Position numbers and translations under genes: made by a program
In this document: positions 23,164 to 62,848 of the stretch, piece after piece
How positions within the stretch are numbered: the stretch's first letter is position 1
Layout of the letters: every line of letters begins with the position of its first letter
Notes under the pieces: model-generated
What the model was told of the DNA's origin: nothing
Databases searched by the model: none
What the model saw: the letters and a program-made list of their open reading frames with translations, nothing else
Assembly: GCA_977030845.1 (NCBI GenBank)
Contig: OZ365110.1
Coordinates: forward strand, 35,154,001-35,218,000
Length of the DNA stretch: 64,000 nucleotides
Source of the DNA: Fimbriosthenelais zetlandica
Lineage: Eukaryota
Direction: 5' to 3'

Positions 23164-24484
23164 AGCTTGCTACATAGTGGAGCCCTAATACTGGTACCAG
23201 AAAGAAGTAAGATATTAAATTCAGACTCTTGTGATCATATTTTATTCGTGGACTAAATGACTAAATGAGTAATATAGATAAGATGTACAGCTCTGAAATG
23301 AAAACCATCACATGGATCTCTTGCACGGTAGAGATGATCACCACCAAGCCAAAGTTAGGAAACTAAGAAAAAAAACCATCCTCACTATATCAGGCATGAA
23401 CAGAAAGATTTAATCACAGATCCTTACAGAGACTGAAGCGGTCATCGAGCGAAAGACATTAGCAATGCAAGAACACAGCCTCTTTCTTGCAGTAGAACAC
23501 TAAATCCGGAGACATTTTTTTTTGCAGCGGCAAAAACAACATTAACAGTGGTTTACCCTTGGCAAAAACTGCAGTGACAAGTTATTTTATACAAATATTA
23601 ATTAATGAGTTAGGGCATTTACAGCAGTAGCTACTCTAGAAATATGAAACGTTTTGGCACCCTATGGCATCAGTATGATTCCAATATTTCAATATTATAC
23701 GATGCTGGAAAATGTTAGTTTTATCGATATTGGCTGACATGGCCAGAATAGAGTCAAAAAGTTTAGCATGCGAACTTTTGTTATATTATACTGAAGCCCT
23801 GTATGAGATTTACATCCGAGTAATAAATATATATACTGACTTTTTACAAATCTATATACAGCGGCAGTAGCTGATGGTGGGGACTACTTGGATCCATTTC
23901 ATAATGAAATGTTAGTCAAAATGTTTATGAAACAGGGTCACCATCCAGAGAGCGGAGCACACATGTACAACAACATTCATGGCTACATTGTGTTTGTTAC
24001 AAAGAAACCGTTTCAAAATAAGAACGTTAGAATTAGTTCAAGTTTATTCTTCAGTTTATGTATAATAATATTATTATGTCCCTTGGATGAGTTACATTAG
24101 AGTCAGTACTAAACGAATGGTCTCGAAGGCTTCTTCATACAAAGTATGATAAATGTCCCTGCTGCTTCTCCTAGATGTATATATACTTTATAATCTTCTG
24201 CAAAAATGTGCCGTGATGAATAGAACTGAAGAGATCCAAAAATGATATTAATACCATGTGACTCGTGACTGATCTAGTCGTAATTTCATGATGATAATAA
24301 TAATGGTCAATGATACGAAATAGTCTAGTGAATTATCCGTTTCTTGTGGTCTAGTAGTAGTACTTTTAGCCACAAATCGAAAGTGGACCTTGCGTGAGAC
24401 AAGGTCGGGTATATATTATAGTGATTCCTGGGTTAGTGCATTTTTAATAGATCAAGTGTAATCCTTAAGGCTCCTATTTAAAGA

Positions 24485-26016
24485 TTACTGCATGAGGTTG
24501 GTTTCATGCGGGATACCGCCGGAGCGAACCACAGGTTGTGCTGGCGCGGGGGGAGGTCCAATAACTGGCATCTCATCTCCTGGTTTGCGTAAATCGTTTG
24601 TCTTCGGGGTGGCTATCTTTCCTGCGAGCAGTTTGTCTTCAAGCGCAGACAGATCAAGCAAATCCACTGGCTCTGAAGGTGGTGGTGGTGCAGGGGTCAA
24701 TACTGGTGCAGGGGCCAAAACGGGTGCAGGAGCTTCTGTTTTGGTTGTGGTGCTTACTGGTGGTATGAGAGGTGCTAGGGCTGGTGGTATGGATGTAGCT
24801 GTGGATATTGGTGCAGATGCGGGTGCGCTAGTCACTTTGGTGGTGCCAGGGCTGGGTATTTCGGGTTTAACGGGTTCTGGCTTTGGTGCAGGTGCTGCTG
24901 CAGCTGTTGAGGCCTTGGCTGGAACGATTGGTTCAGGAACGACAGGTGCAATAGGTTCGACAGGCCTTGGTGGCTGGGGTGGAATCACTGGTTTTGGAAT
25001 CACCACCGGTGTAGGTACAACTGTTGGAATAGCCTGACTCATGGTCACTTCAGCTGGTTTGGATGTGGCCGCCATTGTAGGTAGAGCAGATTGACTGGGT
25101 GGTTCAGGTGCAGAAGATGACACTGGTTCTGGTTTTTTCATATCCTTATTGCTGCTCAAGACTGTGGTAGTTGCAGGAGCTGCAGCTGCTGTTGTCGTAG
25201 TGGCAACTTTCACCGGTCGTGGAACAGCTTTCGGTTCTGTCGTTTTCGTTTCAGGTTTTGCTACAGTTGTGGATGAAGTAGGTTGGGAAGCAGGGGTGGA
25301 AACCTTGATTGGAACAGCTCCTGGGTCGACTACTTTCTTGGGAGGCCTTATTGGGGGAGGAGCATTATTAGAGTTATTTCCGTTAGATTCTGACTTGCTT
25401 GTCTTGGGTATCGCACGTTTGGGACTGCTCTTAGCAGAATTGTTCTCATTGCCAGCTTTAGCACCAGCTTTCTTCGTGACTGCCTTGGCCGTCGCTTCGC
25501 CAGGCTTAGCACCTTTCATACCATTGCTATTAGAGTTGTTCACATTGACCTGTTGGTTACGGGGGCTTGTCTGTGGAGTGGTCTTCTTAGATGCTGACCT
25601 GGGCCGTGTGGTCGACTGTTTGGGAGTAGTAGGTCGTGGAGATCTGGTTGAAGAACTACCTCTTTGATCTGATTTTGAAGGTGATCTTGGACTTTTCCTC
25701 GCTGAGGAGGGTCTTGAAGAGCTCCTTTCTCGGTCTGTTTTCTTGCTTTCCGGGGTTGCAGGGAATAATGGGTCCAGGTTGTTGGGTGTTTTGCATCTTC
25801 TTGGAGATCTCTGGACGTAGTAATGGTGGCCGTTGCGGAAGCCTATGTGTCCGAATTCCTCAGAAGCTGTCATCAGTTCCTTGGCGGGACAACTGGCCGG
25901 TCGTTCAGCCTTGTAAGTGCCTTTGTATGTGGTGTGGAAGTCTATGGACCTCGGAGCCTCATCACTGTTGCGTCTTTGGTTTGGTACAATGGCCTGAGCA
26001 GGGGATGCCCTTTCGC
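24485..26016 (-). CDS. SAXO1/2: SAXO terminal exon (last Mn repeat, GHHYY motif and long P/A/T/S/K-rich tail)
   Basis: ttatttttag|GCGAAAGG...; open for 1532 nt to TAA at 24485; contains the 462-aa ORF of the track. Confidence 0.93.
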
Positions 26017-32000: not shown

Positions 32001-35000
32001 ACAGGACCGCATTATACAAACATCTGAACTAAAACTCGTACCGGATTTTTGCAACTGCTGGAAGAGTTACATGTATAACCAATATAACCTAAAATCTAAT
32101 GTAAATTGCTGGAAAGTGTGGAACTGTGAAATGTTGACCAAAGGATAGTGCACTTGGAAGCCATTGCAGTCAGTATTTTAATAAACTTATTAAACTTAAA
32201 TTGATTTAAAGTAGATGACATTTTTCAATCAGCGACTGTGATCGACTCCACATTTGTTGGCAGAATGGCAATTAATTTGTAACATTGGACACTGGGTTTA
32301 ATAATTGCCCGAATCAAATTCTAATTAAAAATTCTTTCTTGACAAAATACAGGTGACAGGAGTAACCTTACCGAATTACAGTGATGAGGTTCAGGTTGCG
32401 GGGAATCAATCTGTTCACCAGTTATGATGGAACTTGTGGGTTTATATTACGTAATTTCTCTCTGTTAGATCTGTTCCTCTCTGTCTGTCTCTCTCTCCCA
32501 GCACTCGCTCTCTGCCTAACACTCTGGTTGTCTGTCTAGTAACAGTAAATCTCTCTAACTCTCTCACTCCCTGCCCTTGCTTCAGGCCTCTCTCACCCTG
32601 CCTCTCGCTCGCTTAATCTCTCCTCTCCCTGTCTGTCTCTTGCACTCTCTCTGAGTCTCTCTCTCACTCTCTCTTTCTATCTCTCCCTGTTTCTCACTTT
32701 TTCTGTCTGTTCATTTTAAGCAGTAGACCGTCTGGCTATCAGCCACGTCACAACATGAGCCCCAGCAGCCGGAGCCTACAATATTGATTTCACATTCCAC
32801 ATTGTCCAACACAAAAAACTCCCACAACTTTTATAAAGGGTAGGTGATTGTTCGGTAGGAGTTCCAAAGACCAGCATGGGCCGGCAATCCATTCATCCTA
32901 CTTTTTGACTAGTATTGACAATATAAATGAAACATGTGACCTATTGAAATTTTATATGCAGTGAGGGATGGCAAATTTATTCACCAAAGCACACATATAA
33001 TTTATTGAATATTCAAATGATTGTCAGTGCCGTTTTGATATGCCATGGGGGCTTCCTATCTATTTGGCTGTTCTGACTTTTATTGAACATGTACCAATGA
33101 TCGAATCAATGTAATAGATATTCTGATATCAAGTTGCCCTATATGCATCATATCTTTTATTAAATATCTTTTGCTTAAACTATAACGTATCTATTCATCT
33201 ATTAAATTTGTCACTGTAATAATTGCAGGTATGTGCACGCAAATGTTGCAATTATTTGTGGTACACCTTTAAATTATAAGGAGTAATCTATATCTATATC
33301 ACATTTTTCACTGAAACAATGGCGGAAATTCGTTAGTTAGTAATGTTGCAACTATTCGTGACTATAATTCAGCAAATCTATTCATAATATTAAATTTGTC
33401 AACAAATTTCCAAAATAGAGTAATTTACAAGTAATATTGCAACTATTCGCAACTTCATATTGCAACTATTCGCACCTTAGTATTATAGTTATATAAAAAA
33501 AAAATATAGAGCATTTATATATCCTATTTATTTGTTTACTATGCATACTATTTATTTGTTTACTAAGCATAAGACTGTTATTAAACATATCACTAAACAT
33601 ATCATTTAATACCAATGAATGTTACATCCTATATATCGGAATGTTAATGAGCATTGGTCTGTGTGCGATGATGACTACATGCTTCCAACATGTGACAAAT
33701 GCGATATTAATTTACGGTTGACAAGACTGACGAGCCAAGTATTGTGGGATGCGCTGCCAAATGCCTGTTATAGTAATATAAGGCCAAATAACAGCAGCAG
33801 CAGGCTACACACAGCCAGTAATTGATGGTGGGATAAAATAGGAGGATAGTGGAATCGGGGTTAGATCTATAGATAGGAGGTTAACATACGAGGTTAACGT
33901 GCTACATGTGGGTGTCAGAGCTATGGTATATATGGCATATATTGACGCAGTAAATATTTATGGGATATATTGATGTTTTATTTAAAGCTTTAAAATGAAT
34001 TTATTTTACCTTAACATACTGATAAAACATACGGAGGGAGGAGAGGGAGGGAGAGAGAGAGAGAGGGGGGGGGGGGGAGGGGAGAGATGGGATACACTTT
34101 CGATTTATGTCCGATATTTATAATAGAATTTTACTTAGATTTGGTAGCTTAATTCTACGTGATTTGGCGATTTTCTACAAGGCGGCCACTTAATTTTATC
34201 AGGATTTTTAACAGTGTACTATATCGGTGGCGAAAAAACTATAATATAACAATGGATGGAGTGAAGAGAATGGGGACAAGCTTGTATATTTAGGCGCAAT
34301 TTATCTCATTTCCTCAATCATACAGACTCCCACAACACAGAACATCGCATACCACACTCTTCTATTTGACAATACCCAAAATAGAAATTCTCTCCAACTG
34401 CACAACCTCCTTAAAAATGTTGCAGTTTTAAAAGCTTTGACTGTCTGCGCTTTAATCGCAAAGGGAGCGCAAAGCAAATGTGCCCTGGAGCAAAATGTCA
34501 CGTTCTCCCTGTGCCAAGGAAAGTGTAATGTTTTTAGTGTGATTACATGCGAGCAAAAAGCCAAGGGTGGCGAGAGTTAAATTCTAGAGGGAGACAGGAG
34601 CATGCAGTGGAAGGGCTCCAAATTACAAATGACACTTGTAAAATTGGCACTTCATGTAATATCATCCAATGTTTTAGTAAATCCTTTGCCAAATGATGAT
34701 TTACCATTATTTTCATCTCGGTATATGAGATGACAGAACTTTAAAGGGAAACTAGCACACGGGATTGAAAATGAGTGGCCGTGAGCAACTCATAAGAGCA
34801 AGTTATTTTTAGCTCAGCAATTGCTCAGGAATGAAAGATTCTGTTCTCGAAGGCAAATTGCTTTTATTCCTACTTAAGTCTGACTTGGATCGTTAAGAAT
34901 AAATGGGTGGGATATTTTATTCTTGGTCGTAGAATATCTACTAGAGTGTTATTGAATAGAGTAAAAGATTGTATAAATGTAAATGAATGCATTCTGATCT

Positions 35001-38000
35001 CTAAGACTGCAGTGACATCTACTGATATCAGAAATCAATTGAATTTGGGTTCGATTAATTACCCTTGCAGGCCACAGATGCAGTATTAAATGTCTATGTT
35101 GGGTTAATGGCTGGGCCGGGTAGTGTTCAGGGTAGCCTTGAAAGAGCCTTGAGAGCCGGGAGAACCTTGAAAGGCAAATTGTCCGAACAAGGTTTCATGT
35201 CTGCTTTTCTTCTACCTTTCTGTGTTCTTTTTGCTTTTAAAACATCTCTGTTTTTGTCTGTCCTTGTTGGATACACCCTCGCTCGTGCTCCCTCTGTCTC
35301 TCTCCATTCTCTCTGTCTGTCCTTCATAGAACTATGTACTGTCTGTTTCTGTCTTTCTCTACTGTCTGCCTCTTTTTGTTTTGCTAGTCTGTTTTCCCTG
35401 TCTCTACCTTTCTCCCTCCCTCTCCCCCTCTCTTACACTCTCACCCTCACACTTTCCCTGTCGCCCTCTCTTCCTCCCTCTTTCTCTTTCCCTTAGTCTC
35501 TCTTTCCCTGTCACGCTCACTCTTTCCCTGTCAACCTCAGCCTCACTTTCTCTTTCCCTGTAACCCTCACTCTCTCTTTCCCTGCCAACCTCTCTTCGTC
35601 CCTCTCTTTCCCTATCGCCCTAACCCTCTCTTTCACTCTTACCCTCACTGACTCTCTTTCCCTGTCGCCCTCACTCTCTCTACCATCTCTCTCTCTCACT
35701 AAATCTCTCTGACAGTGGCTTCACAGACTGAGCTTAGCCGGTACTACCGTCCACTCCCCCTCCCTGTCACACAAACAGAGCAGGAAGAGGCTGTGCAGGC
35801 CATCTTTGCCAGCAGCTGATATTCTACATGCAGCCCCACAGACACCACCAAACAACATGGCCTCGCCTGCAAGCCCCAGATACGGCCTTGCATGCTTCAG
35901 ACATGATGCAGTTGGTCAAATATATAGGATATATAACCCTGGGGAAACTCTGAATTAAGTAGACCCAATCACGCCGTCAGTTGGAGGTTGGCTAGAACCA
36001 AAACCTTGAACGGTATCATGCCGAAAGAGCTTCAGTCACCCACTAGGATGGACGCCACATGAGAAAGGATGATTTGTGCAGAGCAAGCATGCAATGGATG
36101 GTTGAAAATCGATATCTATTATAGAGGCTTAAGCACAATCTGGACGCTGCTTATTTATAGCCTAGTTGATGTAACCTACTTGGTGGTACCAGCTGAGGTG
36201 CTGATCAGGACAATGGAAATGTCGCTTTTCACGATGTCTCCGCATTTTAACTGGCCCAGAGTGAAGACCTCTCCAGCATCTTGTATATCTTAACTGCTCC
36301 TGCTTCTCCTCCTCCAGTGAGGCTGCCACTGCTGTCCTCCAGTAGGCAGCACCAGGCCCCCCACCCATATAGCGCCCCCCTTTAATGACAACCAACCTTA
36401 AAAGACCCCTTTAACCCTGGACGAAGGCAAACCCTATATATCTATCTATGCCTATATATATGCACGGAGCAATCGATGCGCTTTCCTGGCTGTTGCGTAA
36501 ATGCAAATCCAAGGCAAATGAAAAGCCATATGACCACCCATCAAGCTTTTTTTTTATATTATTTTTTTTGACACACACTCCCTACCTGTCTGGCTTCATT
36601 TCGCAGTTGTATATGTCGAGGAGACCCAGGGAGGTTTTCAGAAAATCCTGGATCCAATTCCTCCATATCGTGTTCAGAAGACCCGGCTTCGCTGCCTGCC
36701 ATTCTGTAGGGCAGCTATATAAGGTTCCTCAGTTCCTCTGGTGCTATATGTAGTCCCTAACCTCAGGGGGTTGGGATTATATAGACGTCCTAGTTTTAGT
36801 GGCAGGGTTAGTGGGCTATAAAGCTTGACCAGTGGTCAGCAATGGTTGTGTAAGTGGTAGGTGGTTGATGGTAGGTGGATGGAGCTGGGGCTTGCAGGCT
36901 GGCTGACTGCAGCTGCTGGATTGCCTGTGGATCTCTCACTACCTCTCCCCCTCGCTCTCTCTCTCCAGCTTCCACTGTTTCTAGCTGTCAACTGAGGGAG
37001 CTACATCCACTCTCCATCTGGCGTCACACACACGGACAGAAGCAGTGCTGATCCTATAGTAAGGCTATGGCTATAGCCAACAAAGCTAGCAGTAGCTATA
37101 GGGCCGTCAATTCACATCAGCTGCTGCTCATGCCTATATTACTCAATCTTGGGTAATTTGTCTCTGTCGCTCTGACTGATTGCCTGTCTGATTTATGGCA
37201 TTTCACCCTGTCTCTCTTCCGGGACCTCTTTCTATCTGTTTCATTGCATCTTCATATTCTGTCACTATCCGTCTCTCACTCTCTCCTTCTACAAATGTCT
37301 ATAGATCTATATATTTCTCCCTCTTTCCCTTTCCTTCCCTGTCTTACCTCCCTTGCTCTGTCTCTCCCTCTGTCCAACTGTCAAACTGCCTCTTTCTCCC
37401 TCTATTTGCTTTTCTTTCTGTCTCTCCCTTCCCCTGTCCCATATCCCTTTTCTCTCACTCCCTTTTCTCTCCCTTCATCTATCTATGCCCCATGGGTCTC
37501 ATTCTGTAATATAGATCCTGCCTCTACTTGACGCCTGTGTTTTGAGAGACTGGCTTGGTAATAATATGGACATATTGGCTAAGCCCTGTATTGTTACTAA
37601 TATTAGTATCTCCACAAAATAGGGCCTTATTACTGGGGAAAGGATGGGTGGGCCAGACAAGCAGCAGCCAGGGATGAGATAACGGACAGATCTAGCAGCC
37701 TGATAAGGACATGATGATGAACATGAAGATGCTGGCTTGCCGTTTGATCGGCCGCAGGCTCTGATCGATTTCATGCTTGGGAGGTGGAGGGCGGTGCTTG
37801 TGTGCAGCAGGTGGCAAGGCAGGGGTGATTATATAGTTGGATGGGAAGTGACAACTCAGTGTCGTTTTTTTGTGGGTTTTTTTTGGTATTATTTTTTTAT
37901 TTGAATTATCCTAATAATATTCTAGTCGATTTTCAATTAATTCAGTATATTATAATTGAACAAAAAAACAAGTAATTACAATAATAACAAAATTTGACTC

Positions 38001-61491: not shown

Positions 61492-62848
61492 CTGTTAGAA
61501 TCCCAACAAAAAATACGGGTATATTTTTCAATTGGATAGGCCTAAATTCTTGATATTTTATGAGTGTTGTCATGCAATTTCTGTAATAACAATGTCAATG
61601 CCCAAAACCTTCTTCATTCTGATTGGCTATCCAACACAATGGCATCGAGTGACATCATTATATACTTGTTAAAGATGGCTGACTCTCATGTATCTCTTAC
61701 TCTGGGGCGACTTATCACATAGGTCCCTAGTAGGAATTGATTTCTCTCGAATGAAGCATCAGCCAGCTATAATTTGTAGGCTAATCAACTATCTAAGGTC
61801 AAACCTACCCAGAAAAATAAATTTATACCAAGTGTTAGGAATCCCTTTAAATTAATTTTGTCTAATTCTAGAATTAGGTCTGGTATACGTACCTTAACTA
61901 CCTTGTAAAGCTCTAGAATGACTTTCAATGTCACATCTTCATGATCAACTCCATGATAGATATTTAAGGGAGTGACATTCTCCAGCTTGTCAAGTTGAAG
62001 GTTCTTGCCATATTGTTCATTCGACCTTTTCATCAAGCCTCCCCAGGGAGCTGGAAGCATGAACTTGTAATCAGCTCTTTTTTTGTGACCCCATTGTCCG
62101 GGTATGGAATAGCTGAAATGGAATAGCGATCCTGTCAAACTATAACAAAGAACTGGCCAGCTATACTGGCCTCGCTCACTTTTTACTCCATAACAACTGC
62201 ACTGCGAAGGCCGCAGTCCAGTCTGAATGTGATAAAACTCCTTATGACCTCCGAGTTGATAGGATAAAATGCGTTAGAAGGTATGTAATTCCGTGATAAA
62301 AAATATCGTGAGGAGCCTCTACTGCTTTGGTGGTCAAGCCTCAAGACTCTTGGCACAGGTAGGCTGAGCCACGAATTTGGAAGGAAGTCATTGAAGCACG
62401 ACTGATTTTAATTGGGGTGATTGGATGTCGAGGCAATCATAGTGGATTAGACTCGGACTTGAGTGTTTCCCTACTATTCTTAGAGCGGAAGGTGGATAGT
62501 GTCGTGTATAAACGGGGTCAACACACTTGAGCTTTTCTTTTAGTTGTTTTGGGAAAACAACTGAGAAAAGCTCTCATGTGTTAACCCATAATTGACCTAG
62601 CATAATATATTGTATGTCTGAAGAATTTGAGCTTCATTCGAAATAAAATAATAATGAGAAAATAATGTACAAATTGCTATATTCATGGGATAATATTTGT
62701 AATTTTAACATTATAACAGAAAGAAATGGCTAATATTGAAGTCAAAGGAAAATGAAATTAAATCCCACCTGAATTGTGCGTCGGTACCTTGTAACTTGTA
62801 AGCTAGGGCAATGCAGAGCACTAAAAGAACCAAAGTTGAGTTTTCCAT
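61402..62848 (-). CDS. GnRH/AKH: AKH/GnRH-superfamily neuropeptide precursor, 129 aa; join(62769-62848,61893-62112,61402-61491)
   Basis: MENSTLVLLVLCIALAYKLQGTDA (signal peptide) | QFSYSIPGQWGH KKR ADYKFMLPAPWGGLM KR ...VILELYKVVK|EQEMALDEC...*. Peptide 1 resembles annelid pQFSFSLPGKWGNa, and ILELYKVVKEQEMALDEC resembles the AKH/ACP precursor helix (IYKLVQxEAxKLxxC); both comparisons are from memory. Introns are GT-AG, phases 2 and 0; the exon-2 donor could also be 61902. A probable 3'-UTR intron spans 61255-61396. Confidence 0.85.
61893..62112 (-). CDS. GnRH/AKH: Neuropeptide precursor coding exon 2
   Basis: ctattccatttcag|CTATTCC...GTTAAG|gtacgt; carries both peptides and the KKR/KR sites. 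Confidence 0.88.
62769..62848 (-). CDS. GnRH/AKH: Neuropeptide precursor coding exon 1 (signal peptide + QF)
   Basis: Acceptor ttattatttag| at 62871, ATG at 62848, hydrophobic core, TDA|Q cleavage site, donor TTCAG|gtggga. Confidence 0.85.

Follow-up and report, generated by a model that had tools for sequence, protein, structure and literature searches.

A putative diverged second hormone copy on an annelid GnRH-1/AKH-1-type precursor in a gene cluster of Fimbriosthenelais zetlandica

Organisation of gene D and its precursor

The stretch of DNA analysed, referred to as the window, comprises 64,000 nucleotides of the Fimbriosthenelais zetlandica genome (G000:C10:35154001-35218000) and encodes on its minus strand a gene that is referred to here as gene D. 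Judged from sequence comparisons, gene D belongs to a tandem cluster of annelid GnRH-1/AKH-1-type ('proto-AKH', GnRHL3) precursor genes, in which it is the fourth member and is transcribed divergently. All features of the gene described below with strand-specific coordinates are on the minus strand.

Exon 1 (62769-62848) of the spliced translation encodes a 24-residue signal peptide (62777-62848) followed by Gln-Phe and the AG of the Ser3 codon. The signal peptide ends in ...LQGTDA, its cleavage site being called by the -3/-1 rule only, and the exon is followed by a GT donor at 62768-62767. The prohormone of the spliced model has the pGlu-type copy 1 directly behind the signal peptide, with QFSYSIPGQWGH following ...GTDA. 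The intron (62113-62768), of which both donor and acceptor have been read, is 656 bp long and in phase 2, and lies within the Ser3 codon of the first hormone. Exon 2 (61893-62112) begins at 62112 behind ...ccatttcag, completes the Ser codon and encodes the rest of copy 1, a KKR site, copy 2, a KR site and the associated region. It ends in ...ELYKVVK before GTACGT, and this end aligns with the ...IYKSIH and ...IYKTIQ of paralogues A and C and the ...DFIK of the orthologue described below, each of which is followed by GT. The two exons stay open across their 100 codons and the splice sites are good. An alternative splice that joins the donor CAAG/GTACCG to the acceptor gacag/GATCG and gives ...KLQGSLFHFSYS... 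was also considered. It has been ruled out because the orthologue keeps both ...DAQ[FI] and AG before the GT donor and an acceptor within the Ser3 codon.

The intron harbours a noncoding dispersed repeat of about 425 bp (62172-62596), of which more than 40 copies with 86-94% identity are present in the genome. The copies are found on many contigs and some have short inverted sub-matches. The 8 bases before the donor (CAATTCAG, 62769-62776) and before the acceptor (CATTTCAG, 62113-62120) are near-identical, and H-F-S is encoded in frame just 5' of exon 2; these two features are compatible with a gain of the intron by insertion with target duplication. The intron is common to gene D and its orthologue and is therefore old. 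Elsewhere in the window, at positions 24001-26000 and 34001-38000, the G+C content rises locally from about 0.37 to 0.44-0.47, and both GC skew and AT skew are strong there.

The exon-2 part of copy 1 (62085-62112) together with the Gln-Phe of exon 1 gives pQFSYSIPGQWGH, which has no amidation Gly. It is followed by the KKR site (62076-62084), by copy 2, ADYKFMLPAPWGGLM (62031-62075), and by the KR site (62025-62030). The minus-strand translation of 62025-62087 reads HKKR-ADYKFMLPAPWGGLM-KR. The K-R columns of the first site and the whole of the second are invariant in the alignments with the paralogues and with the orthologue. The initial annotation had placed a dibasic-flanked peptide at 62020-62067, a range that overlaps the peptide and is shifted by about 8-11 bases from its actual position. 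The segment itself exists as described and, as had also been claimed, is unamidated and devoid of an N-terminal Gln: copy 2 is a 15-residue peptide with a free N-terminus and no Gly before KR.

The associated C-terminal region (61893-62024) contains no Cys and can be aligned with the paralogues and the orthologue. A decayed third copy may be represented by its first 16 residues. Two similar tandem stretches, ...LENVTPLNIYHGV and ...HEDVTLKVILELYKVV, are seen in this region, both of which resemble the single ...DTVMNIYKTIQ of the paralogues, and they may have arisen by a small internal duplication.

Homology of the second copy

Comparison of copy 2 with copy 1 reveals 3 identities and 3 conservative pairs among the 10 core residues, which is a weak match when taken alone. 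Against the family core, [FY]-x-F-x-[LIV]-P-G-x-W-[GA], the sequence Y-K-F-M-L-P-A-P-W-G of copy 2 retains the aromatic residue and the F, L, P, W and G, with Ala in place of the first Gly. A position matrix was derived from 15 distinct peptide copies of other species, D-type genes being excluded, and applied to every stop-free 10-mer, 71,445 in total, that the whole window encodes in its six frames. Copy 1 (26.1 bits) and copy 2 (17.8 bits) rank first and second, and the next best segment scores 14.2. A score of 17.8 was attained in only 1 of 20,000 shuffles of the remaining gene D precursor (5e-5).

The likeness of the segment to peptide 1, proposed initially from the letters of the DNA, is thus beyond chance. 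An accidental hormone-like match in a spacer could be invoked on the ground that only 3 of 10 residues are identical to the first peptide of the same precursor. The rank obtained with an independent matrix and the shuffle frequency speak against it, as does the location of the segment exactly at the copy-2 position of the paralogues and the orthologue, and the probability of such an accident is practically negligible. These comparisons confirm, at the level of sequence, that one precursor carries two copies of a GnRH/AKH-type hormone, of which ADYKFMLPAPWGGLM is the second and has diverged.

Paralogues in the same genome

Three paralogues, A, B and C, are encoded on the plus strand just past the end of the window, A and C being 3-7 kb from gene D. 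Gene A encodes QFSFSLPGSWGQT-GKR-SFSFALPGKWGNV-KR and gene C encodes QFSFSLPGNWGN-GKR-AFNFALPGRWGNV-KR; in both genes the second peptide clearly duplicates the first. Gene B, located between A and C, is without a hormone. Gene D aligns with A and C column by column, including both dibasic sites. The second copies of the A and C types, [SAG]F[SN]FALPG[KR]WGNV-KR, share with copy 2 of gene D their position, the KR flanks, the missing amidation and the missing N-terminal Gln. They are almost invariant across species at saturated synonymous sites, whereas copy 2 of gene D exceeds them by two residues and is far more diverged.

Since copy 2 is present in the cluster paralogues A, C and D, the internal duplication predates the tandem gene duplications. 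The internal duplication that had been suggested initially is supported in so far as a homologous second copy is recognised by the paralogues, the orthologue and the matrix, but it is neither new nor special to gene D.

Two more genes of the family are present on the same contig, remote from the cluster (L010, G000:C10:45807866-45808054; L011, G000:C10:18357107-18357283). Both encode pQFSFSLPGKWGN-amide, one of them without a second copy and the other with a vestige, AMTFS-KR. The loss or near loss of copy 2 in these two genes indicates that its loss is tolerated.

Orthologues and the wider family

A profile search of 1.84 billion representatives returned 34 matches, 30 of which are members of the family, including Capitella teleta ELU16520.1 (P0005) and Platynereis AKH1 AHB62361.1 (P0013). 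At least two full core motifs are present in 14 of these 30 representatives. A protein word search with exon 2 of gene D gave no match, and one with the D-type alignment returned P0007 as its sole match. In a metagenome scan with the D-type alignment none of the 65 pattern matches could be confirmed.

The orthologue of gene D is represented by two haplotigs (P0011 and P0012) of the assembly ERZ25767047, which encode ...SFSLPGKWGH-KR-SGFKFALPGKWGSIL-KR-NSAFGFSLPGQWA-GKR... Its copy 1, pQISFSLPGKWGH-KR, has the same WGH end as that of gene D, and its copy 2, SGFKFALPGKWGSIL, is equal in length at 15 residues. The third copy, NSAFGFSLPGQWA-GKR, is amidated and the tail contains Cys. The orthologous exon 1 (L007:3309-3388) ends in ...LQGADAQI and AG followed by the donor GTAAGG, and 16 of the 24 residues of its signal peptide are identical to those of gene D. 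The acceptor at L007:6051 (ccttccag before T) gives the same intron position and phase 2 in Ser3 as in gene D. The FALPGKWG of this D-type copy 2 is also common to the A-type copy 2.

On the ERZ25767047 contig the A-type gene P0004 lies about 41 kb from the D-type P0012 in divergent orientation, and a C-type gene is found 9 kb beyond the A-type gene. A B-type gene could not be demonstrated in L009, where the match 'AWRIHN' proved to be spurious. In ERZ26222911 the three-copy P0007 is placed about 5 kb head-to-head with the A-type P0002, an arrangement like that of D with A. A D-type gene divergent to the A-type gene of the cluster is thus found in both assemblies. The positional orthologue and the arrangement of P0007 identify D as a conserved, fast-evolving type of paralogue rather than a one-off.

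The order of the copies differs between the three-copy D-type genes (L007:6051-6276 and P0007). In P0011 the copy with ...WGSI[LT]-KR is the second and that with FGFSLPGQW the third, and in P0007 the two have exchanged places, which suggests a turnover of copies inside the precursor.

Selective constraint on the peptide copies

The proportions of nonsynonymous (pN) and synonymous (pS) differences were obtained from Nei-Gojobori counts. Synonymous sites are saturated in nearly all the whole-gene comparisons (pS about 0.8; 0.55 for C against ERZ25767047), including that of gene D with its orthologue (pS 0.86). In the latter comparison the signal peptide and copy 1 each have a pN of 0.16, and the tail has one of 0.55. 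Copy 2, for which only 15 codons are available in an alignment picked for maximum identity, has a pN of 0.39, with 6 of 15 residues identical (K4, F5, L7, P8, W11 and G12). Both dibasic sites are retained, as are the length of 15 residues and a pair of hydrophobic residues at the C-terminus. Between the two haplotigs of the orthologue the 306 coding bases are identical, whereas the surrounding DNA differs by about 1-5% per 200 bp.

Copy 2 of gene D is thus homologous to the other copies, with its position, its cleavage sites and the structure of the gene conserved, and the constraint on its sequence is partial. The retained length and dibasic sites and the pN of 0.39 point to some selection over most of its history, clearly less than on copy 1.

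The second copies of the neighbouring genes are under far stricter conservation. The A-type copy 2 is identical across species in 13 of 13 residues with 6 synonymous differences, against a pN of 0.26 for the A-type copy 1. For the C-type copy 2, pN is 0-0.03 and pS 0.3-0.9, with 3-8 synonymous differences. The A-type copy 1 of ERZ25767047 has neither Gln1 nor the amidation Gly and reads KFSFALPGNWGSGS-KR (L004:3633-3854 compared with L009:10160-10381). The A-type copy 2 of that assembly, SFSFALPGKWGNV, is identical to that of this genome despite the 6 synonymous differences, and is better conserved than its copy 1.

Signs of erosion of gene D in this genome

Copy 2 of gene D has Ala at the position of the LPG Gly, which is Gly in every other full copy listed, and the residue next after it is Pro, where the others have K, R, N, Q, S or D. 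Since copy 2 of the orthologue keeps the whole family core, most of these changes are assigned to the branch of this genome. Exon 2 lacks the Cys pair expected in the associated region of the family, with the exon boundary kept after ...LYKVVK (family pattern: after ...[IL]Y-x-x-I-[QH]). The stretch matching the amidated third copy of the orthologue is unrecognisable. A third exon of gene D was sought by a tblastn search that used those of A, B, C, Capitella and Platynereis as queries, and by a scan for an acceptor with short ORF candidates, neither of which gave anything convincing; a comparison across species of the DNA downstream of D and of its orthologue found none. A match, 'FPLNEC', in L007 was rejected as a third exon as it is without an acceptor.

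These observations allow the view that copy 2 is a vestigial spacer and that gene D, or everything after its copy 1, is decaying in this genome. The loss of an otherwise invariant Gly to give LPAPWG, the disappearance of the Cys and of the third copy, the failure of the searches to find an exon 3, and a pN of copy 2 that is 2.5 times that of copy 1 would all fit such decay. Vestigial second copies also occur in the family, as exemplified by AALGWG-KR of Platynereis and by AMTFS-KR of this genome. A decaying gene would be less compatible, however, with two exons that remain open and have good splice sites, and a spacer with the second best matrix score in the window. At saturated divergence a neutral 15-mer would be unrecognisable. 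The survival of both dibasic sites, of K-F, L-P and W-G, of the length of 15 residues and of the two hydrophobic residues at the C-terminus therefore argues against a spacer. The vestigial reading is considered somewhat unlikely, and copy 2 is better regarded as a probable retained, cleavable unit.

Comparison with known systems

The two-copy design has a published counterpart. The precursor of Capitella teleta GnRH-2, given in the supplement of Li et al. 2016, reads QFSFSLPGKWGN..GKR-AFSFSLPGRWGAQ-GKR (PMC5024129). The text of the same paper names 'GnRH-2, -2a and -3' from Veenstra 2011 (PMC5024129), of which 'GnRH-2a' presumably is the second Capitella peptide. Gene D resembles Capitella GnRH-2 in its succession of signal peptide, copy 1, dibasic site, copy 2, dibasic site and associated region. 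In both genes copy 2 begins with a small residue in place of Gln, and the core F-x-F-x-L-P-x-x-W-G is common to them. They differ in that the Capitella copy 2 (AFSFSLPGRWGAQ-GKR) is amidated and near-identical to copy 1, whereas copy 2 of gene D is a non-amidated 15-mer with LPAPWG in place of LPGxWG and with a hydrophobic Leu-Met end. Unlike in Capitella, copy 1 of gene D ends in His without amidation and contains an intron, and no Cys is found in the tail.

Platynereis dumerilii AKH1, also named proto-AKH-1, GnRH1 and GnRHL3 (AHB62361.1), belongs to the family of gene D, with a signal peptide, a copy 1 of the pQFSFSLPGKWGN type and a tail that ends in ...YRAIQ. Its copy 2 is reduced to the vestige mentioned above (PMC5024129). 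Corazonin receptors respond to the peptide only when its concentration is high, and it is as yet without a receptor dedicated to it (PMC6969523; PMC8557429).

True AKHs have 8-10 residues, pGlu1, an aliphatic or aromatic residue at position 2, FS, FT or YS at 4-5, W8 and a C-terminus of amidated W, WG or WGX (Li et al. 2016, PMC5024129). Copy 2 of gene D has none of these hallmarks, with its 15 residues, Ala-Asp start, K-F at 4-5, W11 and no Gly before KR. Copy 1 has three of them (pGlu, F2 and YS at 4-5), which makes it a 'proto-AKH' in the sense of PMC5024129. The AKH precursors of arthropods and molluscs carry one copy each, and their distant likeness to gene D lies in an aromatic N-terminal half and a W-G near the C-terminus. 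The AKH-like peptides of nematodes are mostly non-amidated, so that a missing amide is compatible with a hormone-like role. Tandem peptides of the GnRH superfamily on one precursor, as in gene D, are also known from the GnRH genes of Ciona intestinalis, with three peptides each (PMC5592718). The Ciona copies are those of a deuterostome and arose by independent duplications, and all are 10-residue peptides with pGlu and amide, unlike copy 2 of gene D.

The initial annotation, which noted that precursors of protostomes usually carry a single peptide, amounts to the proposal that a duplication specific to this gene produced a previously undescribed two-ligand precursor, the second ligand possibly having its own co-evolved receptor. 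In the sister genes the conservation of the second copy equals or exceeds that of copy 1, as would suit a ligand. Platynereis GnRHL3 has as yet no high-affinity receptor (PMC6969523; PMC8557429), and a receptor still to be discovered is therefore possible. The duplication is, however, common to paralogues A and C, to the clusters of the two other assemblies and to the 14 of 30 family representatives, and the Capitella design is already in print as an annelid exception to the one-peptide rule (PMC5024129). The novelty of the design is thereby refuted, and the proposal as a whole is very improbable. In the literature searched, no paper contains the exact peptide sequences of D, A or C.

Proposed origin, processing and significance

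On the reading preferred here, which is the probable one, ADYKFMLPAPWGGLM goes back to an ancient internal duplication as its second tandem copy; it would have been retained as a cleavable unit in a conserved D-type paralogue and would be released as a free-acid 15-mer. The duplication that gave rise to copy 2 would be older than the cluster and common to many annelid precursors including Capitella GnRH-2. In the lineage of the cluster, copy 2 would have lost its amidation Gly, and an N-terminal Gln would never have been present.

Release of the copy 2 peptide from the precursor is predicted from the arrangement of its processing sites. The signal peptide would be cut off after ...GTDA, prohormone convertase would cleave at KKR and KR, and the basic residues would be trimmed by carboxypeptidase. 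The expected products are pQFSYSIPGQWGH and the free-acid 15-mer of copy 2, with calculated monoisotopic masses of 1388.61 and 1695.82 Da; for copy 2 of A and of C the calculated masses are 1408.71 and 1447.74 Da.

A bolder view would treat the unmodified second copies as a separate class of ligands that has a dedicated, still undiscovered receptor, the LPAPWG of gene D being a shift in specificity and not decay. Its members would be [SAG]F[SN]FALPG[KR]WGNV from genes A and C and, from the D type, the 15-residue x-x-[FY]-K-F-x-L-P-x-x-W-G-x-[IL]-[LM]. Such a class appears quite unlikely; if true, it would also point the way to the receptor that is missing for the annelid GnRHL3 family.

Two-copy precursors are old, common and published in annelids and do not therefore constitute a new kind of signalling. 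The second peptide of gene D does exist, but among the members of this known design it shows the greatest erosion. The unmodified copy 2 of genes A and C, with a conservation equal to or greater than that of the canonical hormone, is more notable than the result for gene D.

Within the GnRH superfamily, no branch is less well understood than the GnRH-1/AKH-1-type peptides of annelids. The locus shows that two or three tandem peptides are common on their precursors and that in one lineage, as seen in genes A and C, a second, unmodified copy is held as strictly as the canonical hormone, or more so. It also reveals a fast-evolving D-type paralogue with an intron of its own that persists across deeply diverged species, and it supplies concrete peptides for orphan-receptor tests.
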